Below are positions 886 to 40,559 of a DNA stretch of 64,000 nt, one piece after another (within the stretch, counting starts at the first letter, position 1; each line of letters begins with the position of its first letter). This DNA is from Octopus sinensis (Eukaryota). The translations under genes were made by a program, and so were the position numbers. The notes beneath the pieces were generated by a model. The model was not told the origin of the DNA. It was given only the letters and a program-made list of their open reading frames with translations, and did no database searches. The DNA lies in NCBI RefSeq assembly GCF_006345805.1, contig NW_021832223.1:1-64000 (forward strand), read 5' to 3'.

Positions 886-889
886 TTCT

Positions 890-3602: not shown

Positions 3603-3645
<43 letters not shown>

Positions 3646-4981: not shown

Positions 4982-5001
4982 TAATATCCTCTTTTTGCTC
5001 A

Positions 5002-7570: not shown

Positions 7571-7614
7571 TTTTGGAATATTGCGATATAATATTGCGAT
7601 TACTCAATCAATCG

Positions 7615-7680
7615 GGCGTCATGTGGTTCACCGTTTCTGGTGGCGTCAGATACAATCTTAAATTGTATCCAAAAGAACCA
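7615..7680 (+). ncRNA. HDV-like double pseudoknot (variant L3)
   Basis: P1 GGCGUC/GGCGUC (two G-U pairs), P2 UGGUUC/GAACCA, P3 ACC/GGU, P4 GAUACAA/UUGUAUC, J4/2 CAAAA. Confidence 0.65.
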
Positions 7681-8395
7681 TTAGTCAAAATCCATCCAGC
7701 GGACCTCCCCCTGGACAGCACTCCCTCTAAGTTAGCGCACTTTCCTGGTGGCGGCTCATCATTTCCGGAGATGTTGAGCAAAATCCTGGACCTAGAAAGA
7801 ACCTCAATATACTGAGCTTGAATATCAACGGAGTTAGAGGCAAGGCCAAAGAACTAAAACTTTATCTGGAGAGGAAAGATATTGACGTCTGCCTCTTGCA
7901 AGAAACGAAGCTTTCGAAAACTGGCAAAACTCCCAATTTCTCTGGCTTCAATGTGCTAAGAGTAGATCGCCCATCGAGGCACGGCGGAGGCTTATTGACC
8001 CTTGTCAGAAAGGAAATCATCTTCTACAAAAACCACTCCACATTCAGGAAACTGGATAAAGACTGTAATACAGAATTTCTCGCCATCTCCATTCTAACTT
8101 CTCTTGGACAAATTATTATTGGAAACATCTATATTCCACCTCCCGGCTCCTGTGCCAAAGAATTTACAGTGGATCTGTCTGAACTTGACAAGGTGGAAAA
8201 CTTGCTGGTCTCTGGCGATTTTAATGCCAATTTAACAAAGTTATTCTAAAGGGGAGAGATCTATTTGTAAAGAAAGGAGTCCTGAAACTCACGAAAAGAA
8301 AATACGACGCTAAAACAGTCAAACTAATAAAAGAAAGAAATCGCCTCAAACACAGTACACATCTGACGAAACTTACAACGAGAAGGATTCGGGTA

Positions 8396-10024
8396 TTGAA
8401 CATGGAGATCGCAGAAAGTGCGAGACGAGTGCAAAAAAGACAATTGGACACGATTTCCCGAGGGATGAACAAAAAGTGCTCACTCTCGAAAATGTGGAAG
8501 ATGCTGCGTAACATTAAAAACGCCGACAGTACAAACGAGGATGACAACAATCACCAACTAGACCTAAACACTTTTATGAAACATTGCGTGAAGATAAGTC
8601 ACAAGGCTTATAAAAAATCGGAATCCTCTTCAATTATTAAGGGCAAACCGAAAAGGGAGCCTCCATCATCGTACTTCCTACCTCGAGATGTCGCTTTAGA
8701 AATTTCCCGACTAAAGAATACACGCTCCTGCGGACCAGACGGAATCCCAGCGATCATGCTCAAAAAATTGGGCGATGCAGCTATCTCTGCACTTACGAGT
8801 ATTTACAACTACTCGTGCAACTTCAATTTCATTCCAACATTATGGAAACTGTCGTGCATTCACCCAATCCTGAAGCCTGGAAAACCGAAGGAGCAACCTG
8901 GATCATACAGGCCACTGTCCCTTTTATGCGTCCAGGCACGAATTCTAGAGAGAATGGTGATGACTTTGATTCGCCCCCTCCTCCCAGAAGTCAGTTTCCA
9001 ACATGGATTCAAAGAGGGGCGATCAACTGTCACACACCTAAATGCTTTAATGAAGTTTATATCAGACGGTCTAAACAAGAAACCTAAACAGGAAAAATCC
9101 ATTGTCTGCTCGATCGACATAAAGAAGGCTTTCGATTCGGTGCCAAGGAAAATACTCACACAAAAGATCTATTCCTCAAATATTGATACGAATCTAAAAC
9201 TATGGCTTGGGAATTTCCTGAGCGGCCGTCGGGGAAGGGCTTGCTGTGGAAACAGATCTTCCATATCGAGACTATTACCAAATGGGGTCCCTCAGGGTTC
9301 TCCACTATCTCTACTTTTATTCAATCTCATGATGAACGACATACCACAGCCAGAAGGGGACAACGATCTGTTATTACTATATGCAGATGATATTATCGTC
9401 GCATCAAGGGATGTGAGCATAATAAAAGCAACGGATAGAATACAGGATAACCTCAACAATCTGAGTTCATGGCTATATAAAAACGAACTGGAGGCAAGTC
9501 CGGAAAAATCTATTTTGACTCTGTTTACGAAAAACAGAAGGCTTGGGAAAGTCTCAATTGAAGCGAAGTTAGACGGGGAAATTATACCGCAGAGCAAAAC
9601 CCAGAAGATTCTTGGTGTTACATTCGACACCTTTCTAACCTTTTCAACCCACGTCGAAAATGTAGTTATGGCGGGTGCAAGAAAGATTAACTTCCTGAAT
9701 GCCTTCCTGAAGAACGCAGGAGAATGCAAAGGCCTATATGGCCTAAACAACATATATAATCAATACATGGAACCTACGATCGGCTATGCGTGCGGAATCT
9801 GGGGAACAAACTTAAGCGCAAACAATCAATCAAAAATCGACAAAATTCGGTTGAAAGCGGCAAACCTGCTAAATATTTTCTCTGATAAAGAGATTATCCC
9901 AAAAGCCTGGAACAACAAAGAGGTTCGTCCTGAAAATCCCCGTCCGTACCGAAAATGCGTCGGGACAACGGCGGAACATCGGGAGAGGCTGCGCGAACTG
10001 CTGAGGGAGGCTGGGATCACCTGA
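8396..10024 (+). CDS. Non-LTR reverse transcriptase (542-aa open frame), no RNase H apparent
   Basis: GPDGIP, SYRPLSLL, QHGFKEGRST, IDIKKAFDSV, GVPQGSPLS, YADD, ILGVTFD. Confidence 0.92.
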   Translation: MNMEIAESARRVQKRQLDTISRGMNKKCSLSKMWKMLRNIKNADSTNEDDNNHQLDLNTFMKHCVKISHKAYKKSESSSIIKGKPKREPPSSYFLPRDVALEISRLKNTRSCGPDGIPAIMLKKLGDAAISALTSIYNYSCNFNFIPTLWKLSCIHPILKPGKPKEQPGSYRPLSLLCVQARILERMVMTLIRPLLPEVSFQHGFKEGRSTVTHLNALMKFISDGLNKKPKQEKSIVCSIDIKKAFDSVPRKILTQKIYSSNIDTNLKLWLGNFLSGRRGRACCGNRSSISRLLPNGVPQGSPLSLLLFNLMMNDIPQPEGDNDLLLLYADDIIVASRDVSIIKATDRIQDNLNNLSSWLYKNELEASPEKSILTLFTKNRRLGKVSIEAKLDGEIIPQSKTQKILGVTFDTFLTFSTHVENVVMAGARKINFLNAFLKNAGECKGLYGLNNIYNQYMEPTIGYACGIWGTNLSANNQSKIDKIRLKAANLLNIFSDKEIIPKAWNNKEVRPENPRPYRKCVGTTAEHRERLRELLREAGIT

Positions 10025-10259
10025 ATTCTTCTTTCTTTTGGCTATGACGGTGGTTTTTTGGTTCAATAAATAAATAAAAATAAATCGGGTATATTATAAA
10101 ATAGAAGGACTACATTTTTATGATAACAAAGCAAGCCATAAAAATTATATGAATAAAAAAATGAAAGAAAATTTAGGTTATTCCGACGACTCAAGAAAAG
10201 TCCTCAGCTTAGAATTTGTTAATGATGGACTAAATATATCATTAATTAAGTTCTTGATA

Positions 10260-11446
10260 CAGTGCAACCCCTTATTGGGGCGACCCCAGACGTGGGGCAC
10301 CCTCGGGTTTTGGGGCACTCTCGGGTTTTGGGGCAATTTGAATTTCTATTAGGAGTTTTTCTGTTTATTCTTTATAAGATAAACCCCTTTATGGGGCATT
10401 TAATATTATATATATTTTTTAGTTATAATTTTTGAATTTTAGGCTTTAGAGAACCCAATAATAGTGATAAACATTCATTTCTCGACAAGAGAACCCGACA
10501 ATCGGAAAATACAAGTCTCCTCGTTGTTTGAAAAATTTTAATATTGAACAGCATAATGTATTATATATGTCTTCAAAAAATGCGTGGATGACAAGTTATA
10601 TTTTTAATGCATGGTTATATGTGATAAATGAACAAATGAAAAAGAATAACAGACATATTTTATTAATTTTGGATAATGCAGGATGCCATAAAGCAGATGA
10701 TTATTCCAATATAAATTTTTTATATTTGCCTAAAAATACTACTCCGCTGCTTCAACCGCTTGACATGGGAATAATTCGCTCATTCAAAACATGTTACTCA
10801 CATGAACTGGTTAAATTCATATGTTTTTTTGAAGGCAAAGAATTAATATTAAATGGTATTCACTGTAGATAAATAAATCTTTTAAGGCCTATCAAATATA
10901 AATATGAGAAATGTTTTGCTAGCAATTGAAGATGCTTGGATGAATGTTACTAAAGAAACGATTACAAATTGTTGGAATAAAATTAATGAGCAACGTACAC
11001 ATGATGTGAAAAAATCTGATCAAATAAATGGAGAAAAAATCGAAGAAACTGTCAAGGAAGTTATATCAGTAGAAATCTCTGGTATAGAAAATGACAACGC
11101 ATTATATGACGGAGTTATAAAATGTCAATCTATCAAGGAACTAATTTTTTCAATTAATGCAATGGAAGATGGCATTTTTCAGCATGCTCCAGAGATATTA
11201 AATGAATTTTATAATTTTAAGAAGTTGACAATGGATCGATTAATTCAAAAGTACAAATTCGGAGCGAAAATAACGGATCATTTCCCGACAAGTAAAAACT
11301 AAAATTGTTAAATGAAATTAAGAATAGACATCTTTTGATTTTAAATTAACAAAACGTTAGTTTTTTTCGTTAATATTAAAAAACCCCTCTATCTGGGGAA
11401 ACCCCTGTTTTTGGGGCACTAGGTGCCCCAAAAAGAGGTTAGACTG
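10260..11446 (+). mobile_element. pogo/Tigger-like element, internally deleted
   Basis: TA|CAGTGCAACCCCTTATTGGGGC...GCCCCAAAAAGAGGTTAGACTG|TA; DDE_1 motifs NAWMTS, LILDNAGCH, TTPLLQPLDMGII. Confidence 0.88.
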
Positions 11447-12189
11447 TAATTGTGTCGCTTTATTTTGCGAAAAGAAAGAAAAAAACTTGAAGGATCACAG
11501 TCAGAGCTATAAATCCGGAAAGAAAATGACATTTTTTTGCATAAAGTTTATAAAAATGATCCGACGATTTGTCTTCTATAGTTTGTATTGACAGCGATAG
11601 ATAATTATTCTGGAAGTTTTAGTAAATTTTTTTGTCGAATTTGAGTGGATTTGTTGTAGAAGTTTGCGTTGAATTAAAAATTGTGCTGTTGGCCAAATGT
11701 GTAGTTGTGCTGGTTTACAAGATACCAGCAATTTAGTTTTACCAGTAGCAGATGACGAAACAAAAAGAGTTGTTTTTAAACACTACGATGGTGCTAAATA
11801 TAAAGTACGCCGATTCATTAAAAATAAGCCAGTTCAAAATTATGCTTATTTTAAAAAAATAACAAGTGAATATCAAATTCATAATATATGGAATTCTAAC
11901 TTTCACGTTTTCTTTTTGTGTTACTTTCCATTATACCTAAAGAGACTGCCTCGTCCAAAGATCTAACAACGACATCCAATTGAAGTTGAGAGTCTTCCAG
12001 TCCATTTATTAGATCCCCTTTATTGTCCTCATCGCGTCCTACATTATACTCACATGTTTCATTTTTCATGTTAAGAGATTTGACCGGTATTTGTAATAAT
12101 TAGAGAAAATCTCACAGCAATAAGGTTTTCGCTATAGACAGACCTGCAGTGACTGCTTCTTAACAATTCACTCCATAGCATCAAGAGCA

Positions 12190-12800
12190 ATGTAGTTAAA
12201 GGAAACTTTATCTCTCATATTTCTAGAAATATCAAAGGCTTTCGACAGCGTATCTGTGACCCAAAAAGAAAGGCCTTTCCCTGGCCTTGGTGCTTCCTCT
12301 TAAACCTCTACTTATTTATATCTAAATCTGGTTTTTTCTCAAGAAACATCACGTTTCGAAGGAGGGTTCCTAATCTAATCCAGGACTCTTGTAAGGACAC
12401 AAAACTTTCGGAAAAACGGCCTTAAGTTATATTGAAGTGGTGCATCGGTAAGCGGCTCTTGCACGCCATGAACAAATTTGTTTACCTCGAAATCAACGCA
12501 AGAAAGTCACCAGATCAGAGACCCAGGCCCCTAATGGAACTTGCTCGCCCTGACTGTTTACGCTACTTGGGACAGGCAATTGACGCTAAATCGGGCTACT
12601 ACCTCCATATCAAGCAGAAAGGGAGGAAAGCCATTGCCGCTTTCCGCCTTTTAAGAAATAAAAATCCTGATGAAATGCGAAAAAAAATACGCCAATACGT
12701 ACCAAAGCTAGCCTATAGGCTAGATCAGGGGTCAGCTAAACACAGAAAGTATAAAATAATTAATGCGACAATTGTCCCTGTATCTCATTTGACAGTGTTA
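12190..12800 (+). mobile_element. Degraded RT C-terminal relic
   Basis: DISKAFDSV-like (12225-12255) and RYLGQAID motifs. Confidence 0.55.
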
Positions 12801-13420
12801 TTATCTCGGGAATATAGTTAGTCATTTTTAATTTTACACAAGAATTAAAACTTTCGTCAGTTAGTTGACTCCTTAATTTTGATTTTATTAAATTCATTTC
12901 TGAGAATGACCTTCCGCAAATATACGTTGATCCAAACATTGTTATAATTCCATATGCGAATTTTTTTAATAAATAAAATGACTCAGGAAGGCTATTCCAT
13001 ACATCAAATATTAACAAATCTTGTCTTTCTATTTCGTGTTTCTGCACGATTATTTTTATTTAATTCTTACTTCAATTAACAGCTTCTGCTATGTCTTCAC
13101 CACAGGTATAGCCTTTGAGAGGTAAGAATGACAGAAATGATTCTCTGAGAAAACAACGAGAGACATAGCGGGCAGAATAAATAGGTAAAAATTAAAAACT
13201 TCTCTATATCTTTGATATGGCACGAGGCATCTACTCCTAATAAAATTGATTCCGAGGTTTTGAATTTGTTGTTTTGTTATATTTGAACACATTCTGTCAG
13301 CAACTGTTTTCGCAGACAGGGGTATATTATTAAACAATTGAAGATGTTTCTCATTAAAAAATTTCTCATTAAATTGGAGAATCTGGCAAGCAGAAAATAA
13401 TGCCTTTCTATATTCTTTGG
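12760..13420 (-). mobile_element. hAT (Charlie/Buster, GTF2IRD2-like) transposase relic
   Basis: FGSTYICGRSFSEMNLIKSKLRSQLTD dimerisation region; NIPLSAKTVADR. Confidence 0.8.
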
Positions 13421-13563
13421 AGTATAACTCTATACAACTTTGATATGCCGGATAAGGGTTTTACTAAGTTCAATGAATTCATTTTTTGCTGTACTTTTTG
13501 GATAAGTCATATTCGGAATTCACTTATTTTATTGATTTATAAATTAGTCATGTCGTTGTTGTT

Positions 13564-14742
13564 GTGGTTATGAATACCTCATTATCTATTCTTGTACGCT
13601 CGACCAACACCACAATTGATCCGATCCAAGCCACAAATGTAATTTGCGAATCTCCAACCGCCTTGAGGGCCCGCATTTCGCGGCGCCATAATGGTTCTTA
13701 CGAACTTCTTTTTAAGAATGCTGAGGACCGTAACGACTTCATCCTGGATTGGGAGCGGAATCTCCCTTTTGGTCCTAATGGCCACTCTATTGAATACTTG
13801 ACACCTCGGAACTCAGAACTAATTATACGAAACCTGCCTTATTGGGTAACAGACAATGCCTTGGTCAACATGCTATCCCGTTCAATCTCTACGGGCTTCA
13901 AGGTGGAGAGATTCGTCCGTAAAGGGGTGCCACTCCCGGTGGCAAAACTCACGATGCAAAACAAGATCGAAGCCCAATCTCTGGTCAGACTGGGAATGAA
14001 GATCGAGTTCAAGGAGATTTCATTCGGATGGTTTAAAAAACCAGAGGCCCAATGCTTCAGATGCCAGAAATTTGGCGATATTTCGCGATTCTGCAGGGAG
14101 CTGGAGCGCTGTCTACGGTGTGGGGGCCCGCACAGGTGGGACCAATGCAACTCTGCGCCTGAGTGCCACAGAACGTGTGTCAACTGCGGCTCTTCTGATC
14201 ACTGGGCGAACTACGGTGGTTGCCCTATTGCAAAAGCCTCCCAAAGAAATAAGTTCTCGAAAGTCAGTGGGGGGAGAGAAACCCAAGCCGAAGCAGGATG
14301 GAACACCGTCCGGAAGGGACGAGTCGTCGTCCAGGAAAAAATTGACTCTACGATCAGACAGGCTTGTGGACCTATTGCCAATCCTAAAAATCTGGAGGAA
14401 CGATGGTCTACCAGGAAAAGCTGGGCTACGGAGAAGGGAGTCCAGACCTGCTCTGAGATCTCTGTAAAACAAACTATGGACGTGGGTGTGCAGACGGATA
14501 TGGGAAACTTAATCCCCGAAGTCACAGCGACCACCAGAGGAATCCAGACGGAGCCGACCCCGAGTGAGTGCCAGGCACCGAAAGCGAAGAACCTGAGGAA
14601 GAAGGCAATGCCGACACTTCCATCTCCACTTGATGCGTCGGATATCTTGCCAACTCCAGCCGAGCCAATACAGAAAAAGCCCCCTTTACGAAAACGGGCG
14701 GCGCTCAGGCACGAGGGCAGCCGCGTTCCAAATCAAGTGTGA
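13564..14742 (+). CDS. LINE ORF1, gag-like with three zinc knuckles
   Basis: CFRCQKFGDISRFC (His replaced by Asp), CLRCGGPHRWDQC, CVNCGSSDHWANYGGC. Confidence 0.85.
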   Translation: MVMNTSLSILVRSTNTTIDPIQATNVICESPTALRARISRRHNGSYELLFKNAEDRNDFILDWERNLPFGPNGHSIEYLTPRNSELIIRNLPYWVTDNALVNMLSRSISTGFKVERFVRKGVPLPVAKLTMQNKIEAQSLVRLGMKIEFKEISFGWFKKPEAQCFRCQKFGDISRFCRELERCLRCGGPHRWDQCNSAPECHRTCVNCGSSDHWANYGGCPIAKASQRNKFSKVSGGRETQAEAGWNTVRKGRVVVQEKIDSTIRQACGPIANPKNLEERWSTRKSWATEKGVQTCSEISVKQTMDVGVQTDMGNLIPEVTATTRGIQTEPTPSECQAPKAKNLRKKAMPTLPSPLDASDILPTPAEPIQKKPPLRKRAALRHEGSRVPNQV

Positions 14743-16430
14743 GCGTGATAACGCTTATCAATGCCCGGTCTCTCACGAGACGGGCAACGGAGCTGAGGTC
14801 CCTTCTGACCTTGGCAAAGACAGATGTCCTAATTGTGAACGAAACCAAAATGAAGGGGCCTCGGCAGATCAAATTCGAAGGCTATAGATCCCTCCACATT
14901 CCATGGAGGTCGGGGGCGATTGCGGGAACGGGATCCTCGCTTTACTACAAAGCCGACATTGTTGTAAAGAACTTGAGGATCCTTGAAGAAAACCGATGCG
15001 AACTGATCGCACTAGAACTCCTAACTTCCATTGGATGGATAACAATCGGTGGAATGTACTCGAAGGACCTCAGAAACTACCCTGAAGTGATCAGGAAGTT
15101 CTTTGAGGATAATGAGATGGCCATTCTTGCGGGAGATCTCGACGCCAAAAATACCGTTTATGGATGCGAGACCTCTAACCAAGATGGTCGGGCTTTACTG
15201 AGGATCGCGAGGAAATATGACCTTAATGTCTGGACTTCTGAGGAACTTAATCATTTCTGCTTCAGTGGAGGTGATTGCCTCAGACTATTTCTTTCTTCCG
15301 CGTCTGTGAGCCCTTTTTGCGACAGGCCCCGGATAGAAATGCGGACTGGGAGTGACCATCTGCCCCAATCAATGTTGTTGCGGACATCTACGGAGTTGGT
15401 ATCAGATCTCTTCACGGGATACGACTTGTCCCCTGTGCAATGGCCCATGTTCGCCATATTCATGGGTGCAGCTTTGGAACCTCTCTCCCACATGCATCTG
15501 TCCACGAGTGAAAGTATTGATCATCTCGATATGGCTATACGAAAGCATGTGGTGGCCTTTCTGGACAGATTCGCTTCTAAAAAACATATGAAATCCCAGG
15601 GATCTTGCGCCAAGAGGACCGAAACTAGACTATCTGAGCTAGTCAGAGACAAGGCGCAAGAAGGCACCCGGATGCTTGCTTCGTATTCTGGTAAAACTAT
15701 TCAATGCCAGTTGGGACAATGGTCACGTCCCACCTAGCTGCAAACGAACAATCGTCCGAATGATCCCAAAACCTGGAAAACCAAATACGCAGGCAGGAAG
15801 TTATAGGCCAATTAGCCTTATCTGCACAACGTCGAGGATAATGGAAAGAATTATTTTCAATCGTTTATCGGCTTACGTGGAACAAAATAATATACTCGCG
15901 GAGGAACAGTGGGGTTTTAGACCTGGTCGATCAACCGGTCTTTGTTTCTCGCTTCTTGAGGAAGAACTGACTCGGGTCAAACAACATAAAGCCTGCCTAA
16001 CGGCGGTCTGCCTGGACGTCTGCAAGGCCTTTGACAGTGTCTGGCACTTGGGGTTGTTAGATAAAGTAGCGGAGTTGGGTGCTGGGCGAAAAACTGTCAG
16101 ATGGCTTAAGGAGGGCTTCTTGTGCGAGAGAAAATCGTTCATTCGTTGTGGAAATTTGCTATCGAAGGCCGTGAATCTGAGGAGAGGTGTTCCTCAGGGA
16201 TCGGTTCTCAGCCCCTTGCTCTTTAATATATTTCTGGCCGACGTCCCGAAACCACATTTTCCTACGAGCAGACTAATTATCTACGCGGACGATATCATGG
16301 TTACGGATGTCACGATGTGGGGACCCCGACACAGAAGAAGGCTGTCCTGGAGCAGACTAGAACCGTACTTGGAGGAACTTGAAATCTGGTGCAATGGTAA
16401 AGGCTTGAATCTCGCTCTGGACAAAAGTAA
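14739..16430 (+). pseudogene. LINE ORF2 APE plus RT, frameshifted
   Basis: TLINARSL, VNETK, GDLDAK, GSDHLP; SYRPISL, DVCKAFDSV, GVPQGSVLSP, IYADD. Confidence 0.85.
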
Positions 16431-17646
16431 ACCATATTTTATTTTTTTTATTTTATTGATTGTTAGATTGAAAGATAAGTTCCTTACCGGAATTTCAAAA
16501 CACTTTAAAAAACCGTTATTTCATTGAATTCTACTAATGAATTCAATTGCTATTTTTTTTGACTTGGTATGTAAATGTTCCAAATATTATTTTTTATCTG
16601 AAAGTTCATTCTATAAATAAAGGTCGAGGACTCTAAGATTCCTAATTTTGTCCATACTAGAAATACCACAATGATTTTGGTATAACAGTCGAAACAAAAT
16701 GTTCTCACTTGAAGATTCTAATATAGAAAATAAATCGCCCTGTTTTTTCCATCAGATTTTTAATCTTGCAAAAATCTGAGAATGGATTAATAGCGTTCCA
16801 CATGGTTTTGTCAACTAAAAACTATTATCACTTTATTCTACTACCATCTTAGCATTCGGGTTTAAAATTCGCTCATTTTCAAGATTTCTCTTCAAAATTA
16901 ATAAAATTGGAAACTATTGGCTTAAAAGAGCGGATATACTAAAATAATCTTAGTATTTATTCTTTTAAAATTATTATTAGAAATGTTATTGTCTTTAACT
17001 TTCACTCGGAATTTTGTAAAGCAAATAATTGTCTGTCTTGATATATCCTACTATCCTCCGACAACCACTTTTCTTGAGATCTCTACAACCTATTTTTTTA
17101 AACAAACAAAAGTAGAATAAATAAAATTTATCTTTCGACGTGAATGTGCCAAACAATTTTCTACCACATTTTATTTTTATTTAATAGTGATTCAGAAACG
17201 CAAAAATATTTTAAATTCATAAAAAACCGGTAATCTTAATTAAAATAAACTTTGTTAACTTTAAAAACAAAAATTCTTTCAAATAAGTCTCAACCACATA
17301 CAGTCTTTTCGTCTTAAGATCTAGTAATGACTTTTACATGGACTGAAGATTCTTTCTGCCAATCAATTATAGAATCGTTTTGATGCAGCAAACATTGCTG
17401 GTCTTAAAACAAATGACTCTATTGAAGAATGGCAATTTGATTATTTGTTGAATTTGGACATCCTTAAACAATATTTATAGACTTGTGAAATAAAAATTTA
17501 ATTTTTATACTTATCTCTAACGACAACAAAACTTTCTCAATTTTTGTACTTTACAAAATGCCCGAAAATAAACCTCGTGTAATTACCTGGATCAAATACT
17601 GTTGCCAAAAATTCGGAATTCAGAGTTCTAGAACAATCCAAAAACA

Positions 17647-19936: not shown

Positions 19937-19959
19937 AGGTGTGAATAACTAGAAAATAT

Positions 19960-24050: not shown

Positions 24051-24782
24051 AGTTGCCTGTGGAAGAGCATATCGATCGTCTGCGGAGTCTTGAGTCATTT
24101 TGTCTGCCGTTTGTGGACTTTCTAGGCGAAATGAGACGTGCCAGATTGGAGGTTGGAGTCCATTCTGACTGGAGGTTGAACAACCACAAAAGTGGCCTGC
24201 CCTGTAAAATGGATAAGTGTACCCGTCAAAGACATTTGCTCGGGCTCGAAAAGGAGGAGAATCGACTGAAAGCAGACGCAATATTTAAAAATCAATTTTA
24301 TCTGGACTTTTCAAATAAATTAAAATATTTTCAGCATTGTATTTTTAAGATACAAATTCTGCAATAGTGGCCGTATGTGTTTTCTATAAATCAGTGAGTT
24401 GCAGAATTCTTCCTCTATTTAGAAAAAATTTTCTTTATGTTTCAAAGTCACCAAAAAGTGACTCTGGGATTCTTCCGAATTTATTTCTTAAAGAAAAGTC
24501 ATTGTTAGCCGGATAGAAGTGAATATGATTGTCTATAAAGATCGACGGATATTTTTGTCAATTTTTCAAACTCTCAGGTCTTAATATCATTCAGTCAAAT
24601 GTAATAGTTATAAAGGGAGATTGCATCCTTGTTTATAATAGGTTGACTAAGTTTAATTCAGTTTTTGTTAAGTTTTTAATTCTCGTAGATGGTTCTTCAT
24701 AGATTAAAATTTTTGTTGTATTATTTGTCTTATTTTAGTCGTTAACATTGAAATGACAATTAACTTTAATTAATTCATTTAA

Positions 24783-25193
24783 ATGCTGACCTATATATTC
24801 TTTGTCTTTTCAGTCATTTTTGGAGATAATTGTACTTTCTCGTCCACGGAGGTGACTAACTGTGATTATAAAAATTCTGTTTCTTTTACATTTACAAGTT
24901 TGATTCTACGAGGCATTACATCGTTTGACGGCGATTTTACCAAATTTGATATGCACAAAAGTCTCACAAGTTTGTAGATAATTTGTTTATTGTTTCTAGA
25001 ACGTGTGAAACTCTAAATTTGATTAAACTTGAAGATGTGAGTTTTGGGAACAACGGTAACTTTATCCCACTAGAAACTTTGTGAGTCTCTAGTCCGATCT
25101 CACATTAGATTATGGGATCAACAGCTCAGAAACAATACCGCCCTCCAAGTTTGCTCTTATAGGACCTCCGGGGAGTGAATGACAAATTTTTTG
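24783..25193 (+). CDS. Putative secreted-protein gene start with two micro-introns, abutting a hAT relic
   Basis: Hydrophobic N-terminus MLTYIFFVFSVIFG; removing 26-nt and 28-nt GT-AG introns keeps the frame open. Confidence 0.35.
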
Positions 25194-25199
25194 CTTAGT

Positions 25200-27490
25200 G
25201 AAAGAAGACCAGGTCAGCACAGCTCAAAAAAAAATCTCGAAGAGATCTTTTTGACAATATAGAATTACCACCTGAAATAATAATTACAAGATGGGGAACC
25301 TGGCTTAGTGCAGCCTTTTACTACTCGAAAAACATGCATACAGTTCGCACTATAGTTTCTGGTCCTGAATTTAACAAAAAAGGGAAAATCTTAGATAAAG
25401 TAAAAACTGCTTTAGATTCAATTAATTTGGAAATAAACCTTGCATTGATAAAATCATGTTATAGTGACATATTAGATGGATTACATCAATGCCAAGAAAC
25501 TTTTTTTACCATTGAGGATGCCGTTAAATTTATTAATGTGATAAATTTTGGGGATGATCCATGTGGAATATCTAAATATTTCCGTAAAAGAATAGATAAA
25601 AATCGATTAAAAGAATTTATACTGCTAAGATTGATAATTGTTCACCAGAAATTTGTTCGATATTATGGAAATGTCCAGCAACAACTATTTCTATTGAAAG
25701 AAGTTTTTCTATGCTTCAAAAGATGTTGGAGAAGGATAGAAACTTTAAAAATGATAACATTAAATATTGTCGTAAGTTATAATGTCTAGGCCCGTTCTAA
25801 GTGTCCGGAGTGATAAATCGGATTTATCACTCCAAATCATGTAAATTCTTTGTTTAAGATCTGAAATTCTTAATGATTACTTTTGTTAATTCAATAATTT
25901 TTTAAATTATTAAAATTTGAAAAAAGTAACTCAGTTAACAAGAATGCGGAAATTAAACAAAGAAATTTTCATCAATCAGGTGATTGAGCGTCATAGTAAC
26001 GAACATAAAATGTAAGTTACTCCATGCGAATTTTTTCTCACAATTAACCTCAATTAATTCAATTCAAATCCTTTAGTTTTATAACTATTTGTTGATTGCT
26101 AAAAAGACTATAAAATATAGATATTGACTAAATCGAAAACCGAAACTAAACATAATTTTTTAAAAGTTAATTTTTTTAATCATTGACTTTGGAATTGTCT
26201 TCCTTTCACCAGATGTGCAATTCTCAACGAGAACGGAATGCAGAGAAACTTCTTCCACTACTAGAAATTGTTCCTTGCTAAAAAAACTAGTGAGTGGATA
26301 TTTTCTTGTTTTTATATTTTTATCGAAATCAATTTTAATTGTAACATTATCTCCAATTGTGATATCTTTTTTTCGAAAATTTTTATTTGCGTCTTCTGTA
26401 ACTTTTCTTTTATACTTTACATTATGAGTTTTTACTTCTAAAGATAATTCCGTTTCTTCCGATTCCGAATTAATCTCTTCTTCTGCGCCTCCACATGGCA
26501 AAATATTAAAACCCGTTATTCCGTAAAATAGACTGGGTAAATAAAAAGAGACTAACCAAAATGGTGACTTTCCAGTTGCGCGATGACAAGTTATGTTGTA
26601 TTTATACACCACCTTCTGTAGAATTCTCTCCACCTTATAGATTCTGTTGCGAACAAAGTCTTCCCCAACCAACGTTTGAGAGTTTGGTTATATCTTTCTA
26701 TTTGTCCTTGAGATTGTGGGTGCCTTGGTCTTCCATATATCGGAGTTATTTTCCAATCATCAAGAAGTTTTGAAACTTCTTTGTTGCGGAATTCCTTTCC
26801 ATTGTCCGAATGAAAATAAATTGGAGGTCCGACAGTCTGGAATAAACTCTCAATTGCATTATAGATGCTTTGTGATGTTTTATTCTCTAACGCGAATGAC
26901 CATGCAAACTTTGTGTATGCATCGATGACAGTAAGTATCCATTTAAAATTGTCATTATTTGCAGAATACCGCCTTAGATCTATACAGTCGGCGATAAATC
27001 TTTCGTATTTTTTTTCCACAGAAATCATTCTGATATTTTCACAAGTACTTAAAGAGTTAAATGATTGGCACGGTATGCATTTTGATACAAAATCACGAAT
27101 TATACATTGTTTAATTCCAATATATTTTTGAGAAATTAGATAACACATTTTATTGAACCCAGGATGTCCTTCATTATGTTCATCACAAAGAATAGAATAA
27201 AATTTATTCCCAAAATCATAATGATTTGGAGTGATAAATCGGATTTATCACTCCGGACACTTAGAACTGGCCCGGACGCTATAACTTACGACAAATATTA
27301 CTTTTCGTTATATTACAATAAATTTGAGTGATTAGTTCTAAATATAAGCCTTATTAAAACTTTATTAATACATAAAAATAAAAATTTATTAGGTCATATT
27401 AAGGGCATATATTTTTTCGTTTAAGGTCATATAAGTCATATTTTATCGGTCATATTTGAAATTTTTTAGGTCATATTTGCGGCTGCCCTA
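25200..27490 (+). mobile_element. hAT-like transposase relic (CGGBP1-related type) split by the Ginger element
   Basis: LPPEIIITRWGTWLSAAFYY. The frame rejoins across the insertion (DNIKY|YFSLYYNKFE*). Right end has GGTCATAT repeats and GCGGCTGCCCTAG. Confidence 0.65.
25768..27293 (-). mobile_element. Ginger2/TDD-like integrase DNA transposon, 1526 bp
   Basis: 73-bp TIRs TGTCGTAAG...CTTACGACA, 5-bp TSD AATAT; H2C2 plus rve core (DCIDL, HSDNGKEF, QGQIERYNQ) in frameshifted ORFs 26591-27148 and 26160-26672. Confidence 0.88.
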
Positions 27491-27491
27491 G

Positions 27492-27870
27492 TGATGACCA
27501 GAACGGAAACGAGCCAAGTTTGTCTGAGCCGAACGGTCGAAAAGCAATTCAGAAGGGTAAACGTCAGGAGGAGGTTTATTGAGCACAGAGTTGGACGTCA
27601 GCTTAAGAATTGCTGACGTAGATATTGAATTGGATATGGACATTGGAGCAGGCCATCAATTTTAGCAAGAATCCGGGAATATAGATTCGCCGGCGTGTTC
27701 TTCACTGAACGAGAATTTCCGTTTAGCACATTTAAAGCAGACCAAGGATGATGGGGAATACGAGATGCAAATACAAATTGCGCTCCTCTCATATTTAGAT
27801 GATCTTCAATTGGCAAAAGGTTTGTTTCACAGTGGAGGTTATCAACTGGGGTTGATTTCAGACACCCAGA
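27492..27870 (-). mobile_element. 3' fragment of Vingi-like family B
   Basis: NLHCETNLLPIEDHLNMRGAQF...KNTPANLY is nearly identical to 50380-50600. Confidence 0.85.
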
Positions 27871-28840
27871 TATTAATAAATAGCTCGTGTGACCTTTTAG
27901 GCATACTATCAATTAACTTCAGAATATTTTCAGATGGCAATTCGTTCCAAATTTTCTTTAATTTGACTTCGAGATCAAGTTTATTTTTTGCAGGATCTAA
28001 TGAATACTTTTTCTTCATCATGCTCCAAACATGTTCCATTGGGTTCATGTCTGGAGATTGCGGAGCCCAATCAAGAATTGGAACTTTATTTTCTTCAAAA
28101 AACTTGGTTGTTGACGCAGATTAATGACAGGGAGCCAAATCTTGTTAAAGTGAACTGATTTAGTCCCATTTTTCGCGCCGAAACAAACAAATTATTCGTG
28201 ATTACATTTATATATTTAGCGGAACTGAGTGTTCCATTAACAAAAACTAAATTGCTCACTCCTTGATAGGAGATACAGCCCCAAACCATAACACTATCTC
28301 CACCAAATTTTACTGTCGGCGTTATATGATTCATTTCATAACATGAACTTTTTTGATAACAGTTTTTTTTTAGTATGAAAAATCTGAAAAGATGCTTCAT
28401 CAGAGAAAATAATAGTTTTCCATGCTTCATTGGTCATCCGAATAAAAATTTTTGACAATTCATATCTTTTATTATGTTTTTCTTCGAAAGCAACGGTTTA
28501 CGTTGACGTACTCTTCCGATGAGAAAATGTGAATTTAAATAAGTTCCAATTGTCTTTCTACAGACACTCTTACCAGTTAAATGTTTTATTTCATTCCTCA
28601 ACGTGTTAGAAGATTTTTTGGATCGCACTAAATAAGATGCAATAGAATTTCAATGTCTGTTTTCTGAAGCTTTTTAGGACGTCCGGAACCAGGAATCCTA
28701 TCAGCACTTCCATATTTTTTGAATTTTCGAAGAAAATCTCCGATTGTCGATTTTTGAGTATTTAGATGTTTTGCGATATCTTTTATCGTCCAATTTAACT
28801 CAAAAAGAGCAAGGATCTTTCATTTAATTATTGCATTTAA
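27850..28840 (-). mobile_element. Tc1-like transposase relic
   Basis: GSGRPKK, RQRKPLLSKKN, PTVKFGGDSVMVWGCIS, NPMEHVW. Confidence 0.85.
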
Positions 28841-29064
28841 CATTTTCTTATAAAACTCAAAATTCAACAACTAAAATATCACTCAATAAAGCAAACCGGT
28901 TTTTTATTCACACGTAAAAATTTAAATCTTCAAAATTTTAAACGATTAATGAAATTTTTTATAAATAAAAAAAATCATAAATTTAATCAACTCCAAAGAG
29001 TTCAATTCGGGTGAAAAATTGAATGCTATTTGTCAAAAAAAGTTAATATCTGCAATGCATATTG

Positions 29065-29120
29065 CGGTTCACCTGTCGTTGTGGTGGCGCCCAGTGCATA
29101 TTCTGCATGAAAAAGAACCG
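29065..29120 (+). ncRNA. HDV-like pseudoknot variant, 5' strand of P1 missing
   Basis: P2 CGGUUC/GAACCG, P3 ACC/GGU, P1' GGCGCC, P4 GUGCA/UGCAU. Confidence 0.55.
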
Positions 29121-30283
29121 TTCGACCCTCTCCTCCCCCCCACGACTTTGGGAGGGGTGGCCTCCCAATTTCCCCCTCTCTTTTCTACATCTGGCTGGCG
29201 ACGTGGAACCGAATCCGGGGCCCGATTCTCTGGTTATCCTACAACTGAATGTCAATGGAGTCCGAAGTAAAGTCTTGGAGTTACGCTCCCTATTATCTCG
29301 GCTAAAAGTGGACATTGCTCTCATCCAGAAGTCTAAACTCTCTGTCATCCTCAACACCACGGTTCCCCGGCTACACTGTACTGCGAAAAGACCGGACGAG
29401 AAGTCTTGGTGGAGGACTATTGACAATTGTCAAGGATGGGCTTGTGTTGACCGATGTTACTACATTCGTTTCCTCCCTGTGTGAAGACGACCCTATTCTT
29501 GAGCAAATCTCTATAGAAGTTCCTTTCTTACCCTCAAGACATCTTACACTGTGCAATGTATATGTCCCACCGCAGAGCTCGACGACTTCCTTTATCCCAA
29601 AGTACACACCCAACTTATTGAAACTCCGCGGACTGAAGGACCTGCTGCTATGCGGCGACCTAAATGCCAAGCATCCGCTCTGGCTCCGGTCTCAACCGGC
29701 CGACATTCGCGGCGAGTACATCCTTTCCGTACTCAATAAGTTGACTATCCTAAACGACCCATACGCTCATACAAGGACACCAACCCGCAGAAGAGACAGC
29801 CCAACCTCCCCGGACCTGTCTCTCTGCACTCCATCCTTGGCTGGATATATCTCGTAGAATGTTCGTTATGGCTTCTCGAGCGACCATAACCCCATTGTAC
29901 TGACACTTAGAAGGCCTTTCTGTCCAACGCGCCGTCCTACGAAGTTCAAAAATTACTCGAAGGCTAACTGGCATGGTTTCGGGCTGTACGTGGACGACTG
30001 CCTGCTCGATCTCTCTTTGGAAAATTGCACAGTGGAAAAGACGGCCAAGATCCTGTCTACTATCATTTTGCAAGCTGATAAATTATTTATACCTGTCGCT
30101 TCATACAAGAAGTTCAATCCAAGATTATCATCACAAATCCTATCACTTATCAAAGAACGAGATGGCCTGAAGAAAAACAAGTCCAATGACTCATATCATA
30201 CTATACGTTCGTTGAATATCAAAATTTCTGAACTGATCCGGACTAATAACGGACTCGAGTAGAGTCGTCTCGTTGGTCGATTA

Positions 30284-30556
30284 TGTGACAGGTAAGAGGC
30301 GGAACCACGTTGGAGCCGAAACCCAAGTTGTTATTTTGAATAAACAATAATTTTTTGATTTAATTTTCATTGTAAAATCATTTAGGGTTAGGGTTAGTTT
30401 TTCACTTAGGGAAAAAGTGAAATAAAGTTGAGCAAAAAATGTATATTTGAGTGTTTTAATAAATATTTTAGTGTACAATTTTAATTTTAAAAAAAATTTG
30501 AAAAATTCCGCCTCCAGGTTCCGCCTCCGGCGTGGTTCCGTCTCTTACCTGTGACA
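30284..30556. mobile_element. 273-bp TGT...ACA MITE
   Basis: ~26-bp TIR TGTSACAGGTAAGAGRCGGAACCACG, TSD GATTA, internal TTAGGGTTAGGGTTAG; the host frame rejoins. Confidence 0.85.
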
Positions 30557-31536
30557 GATTATGTCACAGAAATTCCTGCGCCACCTTCTGGAAAACGCTA
30601 AGAAGGATCAATTGCCTTATCGGCGAGGAGGACGGAGGAACTGAGGCCGTTGCCCACAATTCCTTGGAACCCGCTCGCAAACTTGCAAACAAGATTATGA
30701 AGTACTACGTATCGATCAGGGTCCGTATTGGCAATACTACTTCAAGATCAAGACTACTGCCCAATGGTGTCCCACAAGGCTCCCCTTTATCTCCTCTCCT
30801 TTTTAACCTATTTCTACATGACCTACCCATCACTAATGACCCGGACATTATGTTCTTATCCTATGCGGACGACCTGATTATGGCTGCAAGAGATAAATCT
30901 CCTTCTGTGGCTATCGCAATGGTCCAGTCACACCTCAACCGTGTATGTGATTTGGCTATCTGCAAACATGCTGCGTGTGTCTGCATCTAAATCCCAATTC
31001 ACCCTCTTTACTACTGATAGAAGATTCAAGAATGGACTGGAACTATTCATTGGAGACAATCCTATTCCCTCTTCGCGTACCCAGAAGATCCTTGGCGTGG
31101 TTTTCGACTCCTTAATGACGTTCTCAAGTCACGTAGAGGAGGCCCTAGCTAAAGGTCTTCGGAAGTGGAACGTCTTGAAGGCTCTGTTAAAGAAGAGTCC
31201 CTTCCCCTGAAAGATTGTGTCAGCAAGGTCTACCAACAAGTGATTGCCCAGACGGTTGAGTATGCCTGCTCAGCCTGGAGGTTTGCAATTGCTTGTTCGA
31301 AAGCGGAACGTTTGAACTCACTCAGAAGGAAGATTATGCTCCACACTGACACCTCAGTTGGCAGCCTTGCTTCCGAGGAGGCGACGCAGAAGAATGGACA
31401 GGGTTTCCTAAGTTTCTGCAAGGAACTGGGAAACCCACTCAAGGAAAAGGTGGCCCATGCAGAGGAATTTCGGTCGATTATAAAGAAATGCACTCCAATT
31501 GAGTTCCTCTGCAGAAGGAAGAGAAGGTGTTTCCGG

Positions 31537-34046
31537 GGTATGCGGAAAGAAAGTCAAGCGGAAAAAACGTCAAGTGGAAAAAAAGTCAAGTCCGTAAGCG
31601 GAAAAAAAGTCAAGTGGAAAAAAAGTCAAGTCGTCTTTGTTTACTTTATATTGTATCTTTTTCGCAATAATAGCAACTTTTAATTTTTAACAAATTTTTT
31701 CAATACTTGACTTTTTTTCCGCTTTACTTTTTTTCCATTTTTGAAATTTATTCCCTTATAAATTTTCGAAATTTAGCGCAAAACGGAAAAAAAGTCAAGT
31801 TCGTTAACGAAATTACGGACTGTAATTTCATTTAAATGTTCTGCCACAGCTAAGCAACACGTTGTGAAAATAAATTTTAAAAGCTTGGTTCAGAATATCG
31901 GTTTTTTAAAACTGATATCACTTGCAATTGTATGCGCAAACTTTTTTTCGTTCGCGTTAGCTTCTCGCCTGCCGAAATAGTTCGCTTCCTTTGTTTTATC
32001 TATTCTGTTTCATTTCTTCCGGAAAATAAATCACATAAATTTTACAAAAATTCTTAGAGTAGTCCAGATTTTCTTTATTTTTAAAATTTTTAAATATTTA
32101 AAAAAGATTTTTATTAAACGTGATGAAAGGATTATTTAATTCGAATCAAAAGAATATTTAATATTCCATGCAATTGCTTGTAGGGTTTCTCCTATTGTCT
32201 TTTTTCTGTTTTGGCGATCCAGACATATATTTAGCAGCCTTTGTTGTCGATCGAGTGTACTCTTGTTTTTTCTTGTCGTAATTTTTCTTCCGATGGAATC
32301 CTGGTCAATAATTGTTTTCGTCATTTTTTCTTCTTTTTGAAAAGAAGATATAATATTCCATATCGATGGATGACGATATCCCGTCAAATTGTATAATTTA
32401 TTGTTCCATCCTTCACAATAGTTGTTTGTTCTTTGATCATTATTGAGCGTGGCTTCATACACATTCCATAAAATTGGAGGGAACAATGGAGAAATGTGCT
32501 GTATTCTAACAGATAAAGGGTTTTCTTGTTTATTTAAGCAACGATAATAACCACGAACATATGTTCGATCAAAATAATCTACTATATATTTTGAATCTGG
32601 AACATCTTTTGGTATATTATCTATTAGGAATTCTATTCCTTCTTCCAGATCTTGAATGGGCAAAAACGCAGAGCGTCTATCATAGCGCAAAAAATGTTGA
32701 AGTTAATATTTTCTTTATATTCTTTTACTAAATGCAATTCTTGAATTTTTCTCCAGGTTGACTGCCTTAGATGATAATAACATCCTCTAATATGTATTCG
32801 TCTCCCAAATACTGCAAGGACAGCTCGAAATACCGAATCTTCAAAGTCTGCCATAATAGTTTCAAGACAAAATTCCAAATTCAAATTATGAATTGCATTT
32901 TGAATAGTCTCAAAAATTCTTCGTAAATCTTTCTTGATTTAGAAGGTAATATTCCATAAATAACTGTAATTGGACTGGAATTGAACTCAATTCTGATAAA
33001 ATATATTTGCTTGAATATGCATGGTGCCATAGAGAAATTTCCATCCATACCATACTTTGGAATTTGCCAATAACGTTAAATTAGTATTGGTGCTGAATAT
33101 TAAAAGTCTATCGTTTCTTCTTTGATTATCATAAATTAAAAAGTTTTCTGAATCCGGACCAAGAGTTGAAGTTAAAAATGATGGAATATCTTCTAGATCT
33201 AGAATATTTTTGGAATATGTAGAGACAAGCGTTGATTTCTTATTGTTCGCTTGAAAGAATCTGCAGAAGGGAGAATAATTCTGGATGATGTATCACATTG
33301 AGAAACAACATTTGAATAGATTTGTAAGGGATTCTCTTGGCTCTTTTTTGCAAGAAGTTTTGCCTTGTTGCACAACTTCGTCAGTTTTATTTGAGTTTCG
33401 TCTAATTCGTGATTGTGAGAGGTTCCTTCTTAGGAAACTCAAAGTTATGATCTGTTCTTAAGCTTCCTCTGCATCCTTGCGAAGACTTTTTACACAATTA
33501 AAAATTATATAATTTTTTGTTGTCGAGTGCCTTGTATACATATAACCTTTGAAACAAATTTTTTTTCCTCCTTTGTTAGATGATATTATCTCCATTTTGT
33601 CACTTATTTTTGCGGCATCCATAATATTTAAGATACAATATGCATAATATTTAAGATCAAGGCGTAAGATTAAGCAAATAAGTCAGGCCACTTTTATTAT
33701 TACTTTGAAGTTCTTAAATTGATTTAGGAAAAGCGATTATTTTAAGACGGAAAATAAGTCAAGTTCGTTAACGAAATTACGGACTTGACTTTTTTTCCGT
33801 TTTGCGCTAAATTTCGAAAATTTATAAGGGAATAAATTTCAAAAATGGAAAAAAAGTAAAGCGGAAAAAAAGTCAAGTATTGAAAAAAATTGTTAAAAAT
33901 TAAAAGTTGCTATTATTGCGAAAAAGATACAATATAAAGTAAACAAAGACGACTTGACTTTTTTTCCACTTGACTTTTTTTCCGCTTACGGACTTGACTT
34001 TTTTTCCACTTGACGTTTTTTCCGCTTGACTTTCTTTCCTACAATC
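31537..34046 (-). mobile_element. Mutator (FLYWCH-MULE) element with ~257-bp repeat-rich TIRs
   Basis: TIR arms 31544-31800 and 33783-34039; 8-bp TSD GTTTCCGG. Confidence 0.88.
32136..33622 (-). pseudogene. FLYWCH/MULE transposase, frameshifted
   Basis: KICFKGYMY, YMDGNF, MADFE, IRGCYYHLRQSTW, RTNNYCEGWNNK. Confidence 0.88.
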
Positions 34047-34181
34047 GTTTCCGGATTACGGTCGGGTCATCAGAAGATCATGTAAGGAGAGTACGGCTGT
34101 TGTTGGAGGCAGGGATCACCTAATTAGTTAGTTCTGACTCATCTTTCTCGGTGATCTTGGAGTTAATAAATAATAATAATA

Positions 34182-34606
34182 TGTCGCGAGCGCAGCGAGC
34201 GACCGAACGCTAGACGCGACTTTGACACCTAACAAGCCTGTCATCAACAAATATATTTATTAAATTATTTAAAATTTTAACATGATTTAAAATTAAAATT
34301 GAAATAACTTAAGTTTTCCATTGAATCCCATAAAATAATTTATAAGTAGACTTTAATAGAAAAAGTAAAATCAATGAATACTGAACGCTAATTTGGTTTA
34401 GGTTGTGAGGGGGGTAATAATTTGACAGATCTCATTGCTATTTCTCGTTTCAATCTCAAAAATTAGGTCTTCTAATCAAAAATGAACTGTGCAGACAGGC
34501 TTGCTCCTTCAGAAGATTCTTGTTCAATTTATAAATTTTTTGATTGATCGCATCTAGAAATTGAGTGGTCGCTCGCTGCGCTCGGTCGCTCGCTGCGCTC
34601 GCGACA
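34182..34606. mobile_element. 425-bp TGT...ACA MITE inserted in the LINE tail
   Basis: ~29-bp TIR TGTCGCGAGCGCAGCGAGCGACCGARCGC; TSD TAATA. Confidence 0.8.
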
Positions 34607-35032
34607 TAATAAATAATAATATCTGCAAAACCGGTTTTTTTCTACTAGCACTGTATATTCAACTAACACTCCTTTTGCTGCTGTAGAACAGGCATTCTCA
34701 AGTAACATCGGATGGAGAAAGCTATCTACTTGACACTGTGGACACCTCTGGACACACTGCGGAGTATCTTTAATCTTTTGCATCACAAAATTGTGTTTAT
34801 TTACAAGCTTTTAAATAAGTCTGATTAAAATCAAAAAAATCTTGTTTAAATCCAAAAAACAGATTTTTTTGATTTTTAACAACCCTGATATTAATCAATT
34901 ACGTACGTTATATTAATCTAAATGATGTAATTCAAGAAGAATTTTTTTTCTGAATATCTTGAACTCGACACAAGAGGGTTAACAATTTTCAAAACTATTG
35001 AACAATATCAACTACTTCAAACTATTGAACGT

Positions 35033-35108
35033 TGCGTCATGTGGTTCACCAGTTGCTGCAGCTCTGGAGGCGCACAGAATGCTCCTAAAGCATTCGAGAA
35101 AAGAACCA
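35033..35108 (+). ncRNA. HDV-like pseudoknot variant with expanded L3
   Basis: P1 UGCGUC/GGCGCA, P2 UGGUUC/GAACCA, P4 GAAUGC/GCAUUC, ~15-nt L3. Confidence 0.55.
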
Positions 35109-40497: not shown

Positions 40498-40559
40498 AGT
40501 CGTCAAGAGACAAAAGTCGTGGAAGGATACAATGATGTTTACGGAAAATATTAAATAAT

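Follow-up and report, generated by a model that had tools for sequence, protein, structure and literature searches.

Putative HDV-Like Ribozymes, Translated Ahead of 2A Motifs, at the 5' Ends of Octopod LINEs

The 64-kb stretch of Octopus sinensis DNA analyzed here (contig NW_021832223.1, positions 1 to 64,000, hereafter the window) contains four sites with the RNA fold of a nested double pseudoknot of the hepatitis delta virus (HDV) type, one of them degenerate. Each of these sites, three of family A (A1, A2 and A3) and one of family B, is the 5'-terminal module of an octopod non-long terminal repeat retrotransposon, or long interspersed nuclear element (LINE), with one open reading frame (ORF) for a leader, a 2A motif, an apurinic/apyrimidinic (AP) endonuclease and a reverse transcriptase. 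The fold is real, conserved and beyond chance expectation, and it is dual-coded, specifying both RNA structure and protein. Judging from their sequences, the sites quite probably are new members of the HDV-like (delta-like) family of self-cleaving ribozymes, placed at the 5' ends of LINEs.

Four HDV-Type Folds in the Window

The helices of each copy were segmented by hand and every helix was checked. Paired regions (P), loops (L) and joining strands (J) have the following positions.

A1 fold, 7615-7680, plus strand: P1 7615-7620/7642-7647; J1/2 AUG 7621-7623; P2 7624-7629/7675-7680; P3 7630-7632/7639-7641; L3 7633-7638; P4 7649-7656/7662-7669; J4/2 7669/7670-7674; P1.1 candidates A7648-G7649; C7669/C7670, then AAAA
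A2 degenerate fold, 29057-29120, plus strand: P1 5' strand 29057-29062; UUG 29062-29064; P2 29065-29070/29115-29120; P3 29071-29073/29083-29085; L3 29074-29082; P1' 29086-29091; P4 29094-29098/29104-29108; J4/2 GAAAAA, without C
A3 fold, 35033-35108, plus strand: P1 35033-35038/35069-35074; AUG 35039-35041; P2 35042-35047/35103-35108; P3 35048-35050/35066-35068 (extendable by AG/CU); L3 35051-35065; P4 35077-35083/35089-35095; candidate catalytic C35095; J4/2 GAGAAAA
Family B fold (canonical), 47779-47846, plus strand: P1 47779-47785/47809-47815, first pair G.U; P2 47786-47795/47837-47846; P3 47796-47798/47806-47808; L3 47799-47805; P4 47819-47821/47827-47829; P1.1 C47801-G47816 and U47800-A47817; catalytic C47831, then GAAAA

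The nested order P1-P2-P3-P3'-P1'-P4-P4'-P2' is present in A1, A3 and B, A2 being devoid of P1. In A1, a P1 of 6 bp including two G.U pairs (GGCGUC/GGCGUC) is combined with P2 UGGUUC/GAACCA, P3 ACC/GGU, an L3 of 6 nucleotides (nt; GUUUCU) and a P4 of 8 bp; A3 has the same P2 together with P1 UGCGUC/GGCGCA, P3 (A)CC/GG(A), a 15-nt L3 and a 7-bp P4. A2 keeps P2 (CGGUUC/GAACCG), P3 (ACC/GGU) and P4 (5 bp) around an L3 of 9 nt and has lost P1, GCAUAU (29057-29062) pairing with GGCGCC at only 2/6 positions. Family B shows P1 GUCUGUC/GGUAGAU, a P2 of 10 bp, P3 ACC/GGU, a P4 of 3 bp and J4/2 UCGAAAA, with a GA after P1' that is able to pair with the UC of L3.

The original prediction, made for the three family A sites, had given them one common helix order; its coordinates and order are correct for A1 and A3 and do not extend to the P1 of A2. 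The family B fold falls beyond the range (7615-35108) that it gave. The compensatory change that it had reported in P2 (UGGUUC/GAACCA vs CGGUUC/GAACCG) is found in A2, at 29065-29070/29115-29120, and its L3 lengths of 6, 9 and 15 nt, none of them canonical, are those of A1, A2 and A3, respectively.

Conservation and Covariation of the Fold

Os1, lying at the locus of the O. sinensis protein P0122, and three further copies, found when motifs and the model were run against 80 kb of O. sinensis sequence, extend the set to eight.

Os1, L007 9995-10061: fold at the P0122 locus
Os2, L007 3158-3088, minus strand: fold
Os3, L005 25878-25789, minus strand: fold
Os4, L005 28964-~28877, minus strand: fold
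Os3 and Os4 elements, L005 25892-25600 and 28978-28720, minus strand: ~270 nt, ~72% mutual identity

A covariance model seeded with A1, Os1 and A3, in which P1, P3 and P4 were paired and P2 was left unpaired, matches eight sites and no others across 144 kb of octopod DNA (A1-A3, B and Os1-Os4), the five non-seed sites with E values from 4e-9 to 5e-3; with filters off, it still detects nothing in the window beyond A1-A3 and B. Covariation was then counted over 23 pairs of the eight-copy alignment guided by this model, with P2 added as a pseudoknot (MAFFT alone misplaced L3, P4 and J4/2). Standard pairs fill 90.4% of the pair cells, compared with 71.6% in shuffled alignments (0/500 reach the observed value) and 29-49% in slid controls, and changes on both sides occur at 14/23 pairs (P1 4/6, P2 3/6, P4 7/8). 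That these counts derive from only eight sequences, three of which are the model seed, and from an alignment fitted to P1, P3 and P4 weighs against the ribozyme assignment; the low slid controls, and P2, which is outside the model and is 97.9% paired, nevertheless speak for a real signal. The P4 stems, dissimilar in sequence among copies, pair in all of them, just as had been predicted, and the larger alignment bears out the earlier claim of covarying, HDV-type double pseudoknots at LINE 5' ends. By contrast, z-scores from nested minimum-free-energy folding, which is unable to represent a pseudoknot, are for that reason weak (-0.1 to -3.0); it shows P1+P4 or P2+P4 alternately.

(Of the other searches, two structural descriptors were too permissive in AT-rich DNA, with 466 matches on one strand and 230 in 328 kb, and were not used as evidence. 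A metagenome scan with ATGTGGTTCACC-N35-65-AGAACC gave 120 loci, every one a chance match in which P1 and P3 do not pair. When the N-terminus of A1 alone was used as protein query, one weak relative was found, the contig of which, L006, contained nothing useful, and inspection upstream of the distant 2A LINEs L001-L003 and of L128 revealed no evident fold.)

Position at the 5' End of 2A-Containing LINEs

The window is AT-rich (64% A+T) and dense with decayed transposable elements, several of its repeats having 71-88% identity to O. sinensis loci; its top named protein matches, too, come from O. sinensis. AP endonuclease and reverse transcriptase domains (Pfam Exo_endo_phos and RVT_1) follow 3' of each fold site; the nearest named matches of the reverse transcriptase are generic. 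The AAYCCNGGNCC pattern encoding ..NPGP occurs in the window at 7782, 29212, 35210 and 47973 (4 observed vs 0.37 expected by chance), and all four occurrences sit in D(V/I)ExNPGP 2A motifs just 5' of the endonuclease, upstream of and in frame with the AP endonuclease and reverse transcriptase. The four folds are thus matched by four motifs, at a distance of ~100-180 nt from fold to NPGP.

A1 2A/StopGo motif GDVEQNPGP, 7767-7793, plus strand
A1 coding remains, 7731-10021, plus strand: AP endonuclease 7731-8246; reverse transcriptase 8225-10021, in another frame
A1 3' tail, 10065-10089, plus strand: (AAAT/AATA)n, then AATCGGG at 10083-10089, read from the sequence
A2 2A motif GDVEPNPGP, 29197-29223, plus strand: fold in the same frame
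A2 AP endonuclease remains, 29306-29854, plus strand: frameshifted
A3 2A motif GDVEENPGP (35195-35221) and AP endonuclease, 35168-35833, plus strand
Family B 2A motif GDIEPNPGP, 47958-47984, plus strand
Family B AP endonuclease and reverse transcriptase remains, 47985-50757, plus strand: several frames; reverse transcriptase 49539-50366

The homology between A1 and Os1 starts at the fold, the 60 nt upstream of it aligning at random level (51%). Moreover, the AATCGGG found at 7610-7616 recurs at 10083-10089, directly after the AAT-rich tail of A1, so that AATCGG(G) is a probable target-site duplication of this element; because the duplication ends at 7616, the 5' end of A1 would fall at 7616-7617, on the first or second base of P1. 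For no other element could a target-site duplication be proposed. Homology and probable duplication both begin at P1, and the HDV-like fold lies within the first ~80 nt of the element. (The 18 nt upstream of Os2, L007 3175-3158 on the minus strand, ACGGUUCACCUUCUCGUG, repeat element positions ~8-27; a template jump as reverse transcription ends would be expected to leave such a partial 5' duplication.)

Catalytic Core Signatures

In every sequence-level feature tested, Os2 and B conform to HDV-like ribozymes. Their core contains a 7-bp P1 starting with G.U, a P3 of 2-3 bp, a 7-nt L3 with the sequence UUCUCG(U/C) (UUCUCGU in Os2, UUCUCGC in B), a 2-bp P1.1, a hairpin P4 and a J4/2 in which the first base is C, followed by N-A-A. 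The catalytic cytosine at J4/2 position 1 is a criterion of HDV-like ribozymes (PMC10879173). It is clear in A1 (C7669/C7670) and B (C47831), replaced by G in A2, and in A3 would be C35095, which is free only when the G-C pair that closes P4 opens; the earlier reading of a clear J4/2 C in the first family A copy alone, and possibly in the third, is therefore accurate. One parse, P1', N38-G39, P4, C-N-A-A, P2', fits all copies except A2. Within it, the P1.1 pair 22-38 forms a compensatory series: Os2 and B have C-G, Os1 has U.G and A1 has U-A. The second P1.1 pair is U.G or U-A in Os2 and B; A1 combines U-A with U.G, which is weaker, and only a single pair is present in A3 and in A2. P1 opens with G.U in B, Os2 and Os4; its first pair is G-C in A1, or G.U if the RNA starts at 7616, and U-A in A3, or G-C if the RNA starts at 35034.

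An L3 of ~7-8 nt with the conserved C, which forms P1.1, and the conserved G is found in B and Os2 and in none of A1, A2 and A3, given that GUUUCU of A1 has no G in its 3' part and the loops of A2 and A3 are unrelated to the consensus. The G of L3 is invariant in R2 ribozymes and its loss accompanies inactivity (PMC3774820). From such departures the original prediction had considered an undescribed HDV-like subtype, a proposal that the wider comparison does not support in that form: family A, with the same J1/2-P2-P3 block AUGUGGUUCACC, includes the textbook Os2, and family B is textbook too, while the copies initially flagged are dead (see below). Since Os2 has the exact GUCAUGUGGUUCACC of A1 and A3 together with a textbook core, family A descends from a canonical ribozyme. 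The sites are thus an unusual example of a known device and not a new ribozyme class.

L3 Variants: Decay or Loss of Cleavage?

Several observations weigh against the sites being self-cleaving ribozymes. The sole candidate catalytic C also closes P4 in Os1 and A3, and the first P1 pair in A1, A3 and Os1 is G-C, U-A or mismatched instead of G.U. The L3 of A1 and Os1 lacks the G that R2 ribozymes never change (PMC3774820), and in A3, Os3 and Os4 the loop becomes an extension of P3. Os3 and Os4 share ~14 nt upstream of P1 that a cleaved RNA template would not carry. Finally, no copy matches an Rfam model of the HDV family, either at the gathering threshold or, for four of the folds, at E<=10. These models are narrow, and the pseudoknot is not part of them.

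Part of the variation in L3 and core is decay, because all three flagged copies, A1, A2 and A3, are dead insertions, that is, molecular fossils. A1 carries a frameshift and a TAA; in A2 the AUG has become UUG, P1 is broken and the J4/2 C is absent; A3 is inactivated by the following stop codon.

A3 in-frame TAG, 35165-35167, plus strand: between fold and 2A motif

The idea that L3 variation is a feature of lineages stands for another part of it. The 6-nt loop of A1 (GUUUCU) recurs in Os1 (UUUUCU), and the two copies are 85% identical in the fold, 61% in the 240 nt that follow it and 64-68% over the whole element; because of this contrast between fold and downstream sequence, the 6-nt L3 appears to have been inherited from an active ancestor and not to have arisen by decay of a single copy. 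On sequence grounds, then, one L3-variant lineage (6-nt L3; A1/Os1) is probably real. In A3, the 15-nt L3 lets P3 extend, and in Os3 and Os4 an insert of ~28 nt turns L3 into a long continuation of P3. These two are short interspersed nuclear element (SINE)-like, non-autonomous derivatives made of the 5' fold module, an A1-like 3' end and an AAT-rich tail; their P3-hairpin L3 should abolish the HDV active site, and the upstream stretch that they have in common is what would be expected if their RNA is not cut at P1. Given their altered L3 loops, A1 and A3 are predicted to have weak ribozyme activity or none. The sow-bug R2 ribozyme, substituted at the conserved C and G of L3, is inactive in vitro (PMC3774820). 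There are thus probably lineages in which the core is altered and may not cleave, each L3-variant type being known from only one or two copies.

Some of these lineages (A1/Os1 with 6-nt L3, A3, Os3/Os4) may have given up cleavage and kept the fold as a 5' pseudoknot without catalysis, which would shield uncapped or read-through RNA or place the ribosome at the AUG. This possibility, the second of the two offered by the original prediction and one which is compatible with self-cleavage in the other lineages, would account for the persistence of the 6-nt L3 in A1 and Os1 despite 61-68% identity elsewhere, for the continued covariation of P1, P2, P3 and P4 in variant copies, for the 14-nt leader kept upstream of P1 in Os3/Os4 and for L3 insertions that extend P3; it also agrees with the inactivity of R2 ribozymes that have lost the conserved C and G of L3 (PMC3774820). 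However, the window copies of the variant types are all dead, so that post-insertion decay explains much of the variation; A1 and Os1 retain a possible P1.1 (U-A or U.G) and the first-position C of J4/2, with which weak activity is possible; and one or two copies per variant type are few. On balance we consider this reading doubtful, if worth pursuing, and HDV-like self-cleavage the better account of the sites.

A Start Codon inside the Fold

The original prediction had overlooked that the fold is also coding sequence. In family A the AUG of J1/2 is the start codon of the ORF, so that translation covers the entire fold (MWFT...KRT) in the frame of 2A, and the N-terminus of the O. sinensis protein P0122 is MWFTFSGGAGYSPKRYLKRTI...GDVEQNPGP (MWFTFSGG...KRTI...GDVEQNPGP). 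The ORF running from this AUG across fold and 2A into the endonuclease is open for 377 amino acids in Os1 and for at least 615 in Os2, and the folds of A3 and A2 are in frame with their own 2A motifs. In A1 an indel in the region of P4 has put the AUG out of this frame, and the ORF of family B starts at another point of the fold.

A1 AUG in J1/2, 7621-7623, plus strand: out of frame with the 2A motif; TAA at 7728-7730
Family B start codon, 47814-47816, plus strand: shared with the end of P1' and the first base of P1.1; preceded by a TAG; same frame as the 2A motif

With coding and structure superimposed, the sequence might have been kept only for its N-terminal peptide (MWFT...), the pairing being incidental; the AUGUGGUUCACC block and ...AAAAGAACC do lie in the ORF and are nearly invariant. 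Coding alone is unable to explain the fold, because the 5' strand of P1, which is upstream of the AUG, still covaries with P1'; because the peptides encoded by P4 are unrelated (GVRYNLKLY, AQNAPKAFE, LDADFTSAT) while P4 always pairs; and because the ORF of family B begins 35 nt further into the fold with every helix kept. We thus regard a purely peptide-level constraint as extremely improbable. Somewhat less remote, even if still unlikely, is that the first ~70 nt act mainly as an internal promoter at the DNA level, the RNA fold being secondary. LINEs need a promoter that travels with them, and in L1Tc of Trypanosoma cruzi the same 77 nt, Pr77, are both internal Pol II promoter and ribozyme (PMC3383444, PMC5814959); a DNA element, however, predicts no compensatory changes in four helices.

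Proposed Mechanism and Implications

If the sites are self-cleaving ribozymes, the element would be transcribed by read-through from upstream DNA, after which the double pseudoknot would fold and cut at the first base of P1, leaving a defined, structured 5'-OH end and carrying the whole ribozyme to the next insertion. The same RNA would serve as mRNA: family A would initiate at the J1/2 AUG, ~7 nt from the processed end, and family B at the P1'/P1.1 junction, ~36 nt from it. HDV-like ribozymes are said, on the part of Ruminski and colleagues, to promote translation initiation in LINEs. The ribosome would then read through P2, P3, L3, P1', P4 and J4/2, producing a leader of ~50-60 amino acids dictated by RNA structure, and skipping at the 2A motif (D[V/I]ExNPGP) would free this leader from the enzyme. 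From the role attributed to 2A, the motif should thus shed the fold-encoded leader peptide.

Combining these elements, we tentatively suggest, as a conjecture with perhaps a modest chance of holding in full, that one metazoan lineage of HDV-like ribozymes is wholly translated, with the AUG in J1/2 or at the P1'/P1.1 junction; that 2A exists to discard the leader dictated by the fold; and that L3-remodelled sublineages, with 6 nt or a long P3 hairpin, are non-cleaving 5' pseudoknots for initiation or RNA protection that also head SINE-like derivatives. Were this so, ribozyme and 2A would be mechanistically linked in animals, the ribozyme serving both as 5' processing device and as the first ~20 codons of the mRNA. 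The removal of a junk peptide by 2A would explain the constant N-terminal location of 2A in single-ORF LINEs. The elements would also offer a natural system in which the ribosome must initiate within a double pseudoknot and then unwind it, as well as a graded series of natural L3 variants for probing the tolerance of the HDV core. For the annotation of cephalopod LINE families, the fold is a precise marker of full-length 5' ends.

Other Features of the Window

Another LINE, at 13543-16527 (plus strand), is devoid of 2A and consists of an upstream ORF of 399 amino acids without Pfam match, followed, in shifted frames, by AP endonuclease and reverse transcriptase; the covariance model, with filters off, detects no HDV-like fold on its 5' side. 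The 3' part of family B (50368-50751) has an inverted copy at 27490-27858, ~23 kb apart and with 88.8% identity. An inverted repeat of 261 bp (31544-31804/33779-34039, 99.2% identity) flanks ~2 kb just 3' of A2 and could represent DNA transposon ends or a recent inverted duplication. Two Rfam matches to 5S rRNA, at 36589-36684 (plus strand, 67 bits) and 40402-40517 (minus strand, 64 bits), are inverted with 93.7% mutual identity; the former is 5'-truncated and lies within or just after element A3, and the two may be 5S pseudogenes or a 5S-derived SINE. The ends of the window, 1-5364 and 58649-64000, form a 5.37-kb direct repeat (99.3% identity, spaced 58.65 kb), which may have arisen by a recent duplication, segmental or tandem, or reflect an error of assembly. 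Inside these duplicated ends lie blocks of a ~330-bp tandem repeat (94-98% identical) at 209-878, 2369-3179, 58706-59516 and 61007-61816.

Comparison with Known Systems

The cores of B and Os2 resemble those of genomic HDV and CPEB3 in their short P3, L3 UUCUCG(C/U), 2-bp P1.1 and C-N-A-A in J4/2. The L3 of CPEB3 is UUCACGU and that of HDV is UCCUCGCU. Genomic HDV also has AUG as J1/2, like family A. The octopus folds differ from both in having no Rfam match, a short P4 and another genomic context.

In R2, R4, Dong, Baggins and L1Tc the 5' ends are processed by HDV-like ribozymes, and it has been proposed that retrotransposon HDV-like ribozymes also act in translation initiation (PMC3774820). 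R2, R4, Dong, Baggins and RTE share with the octopus elements this nested double pseudoknot and its place at or close to the 5' junction, with proposed release from a co-transcript (PMC3774820), but are without 2A. R2 ribozymes have long inserts in J1/2 or P4 and a highly conserved 15-nt P1.1/P3/L3 core, whereas the octopus L3 ranges from 6 to 29 nt.

APE-type LINEs with a single ORF and 2A just upstream of the AP endonuclease have been described in the molluscs Aplysia, Crassostrea and Lottia (Odon et al. 2013, PMC3708506), in a survey of metazoan LINEs that does not include cephalopods and does not mention the word ribozyme once. LINE 5' HDV-like ribozymes and LINE N-terminal 2A peptides are thus each known, and both occur together in L1Tc. 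A literature search found no paper joining octopus, HDV and retrotransposon, and a translated ribozyme followed by 2A appears to be an undescribed architecture in the literature covered, which excludes Ruminski et al. (2011) and Webb et al. (2009). A canonical HDV-like fold also occurs at ~1008-1082 of L129, an unrelated 2A LINE in an ENA metagenome assembly, with P1 CCCGUC/GGCGGG, L3 UCCACGU, GG for P1.1, a 9-bp P4 and J4/2 ACGAAAGG; read from an ATG that immediately precedes P1, it is in frame with the 2A of its element, although one stop intervenes. By this example, the coupling of ribozyme and 2A may be widespread or general.

By analogy of architecture, the closest known system is L1Tc, of the ingi clade, in which an HDV-like ribozyme (Pr77/L1TcRz) occupying the first ~77 nt is followed by an N-terminal 2A (L1Tc2A; DxExNPGP) in a single ORF, in frame with AP endonuclease and reverse transcriptase (PMC5814959, PMC3185411, PMC3383444). 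The likeness extends to the non-autonomous NARTc, which has the 5' module of L1Tc much as Os3 and Os4 have that of the octopus elements (PMC5814959, PMC3185411, PMC3383444). Apart from the host, a kinetoplastid instead of a cephalopod, the main difference lies in translation: the ribozyme of L1Tc is described as 5' untranslated region, whereas the octopus start codon is inside the fold and the body of the ribozyme is translated.

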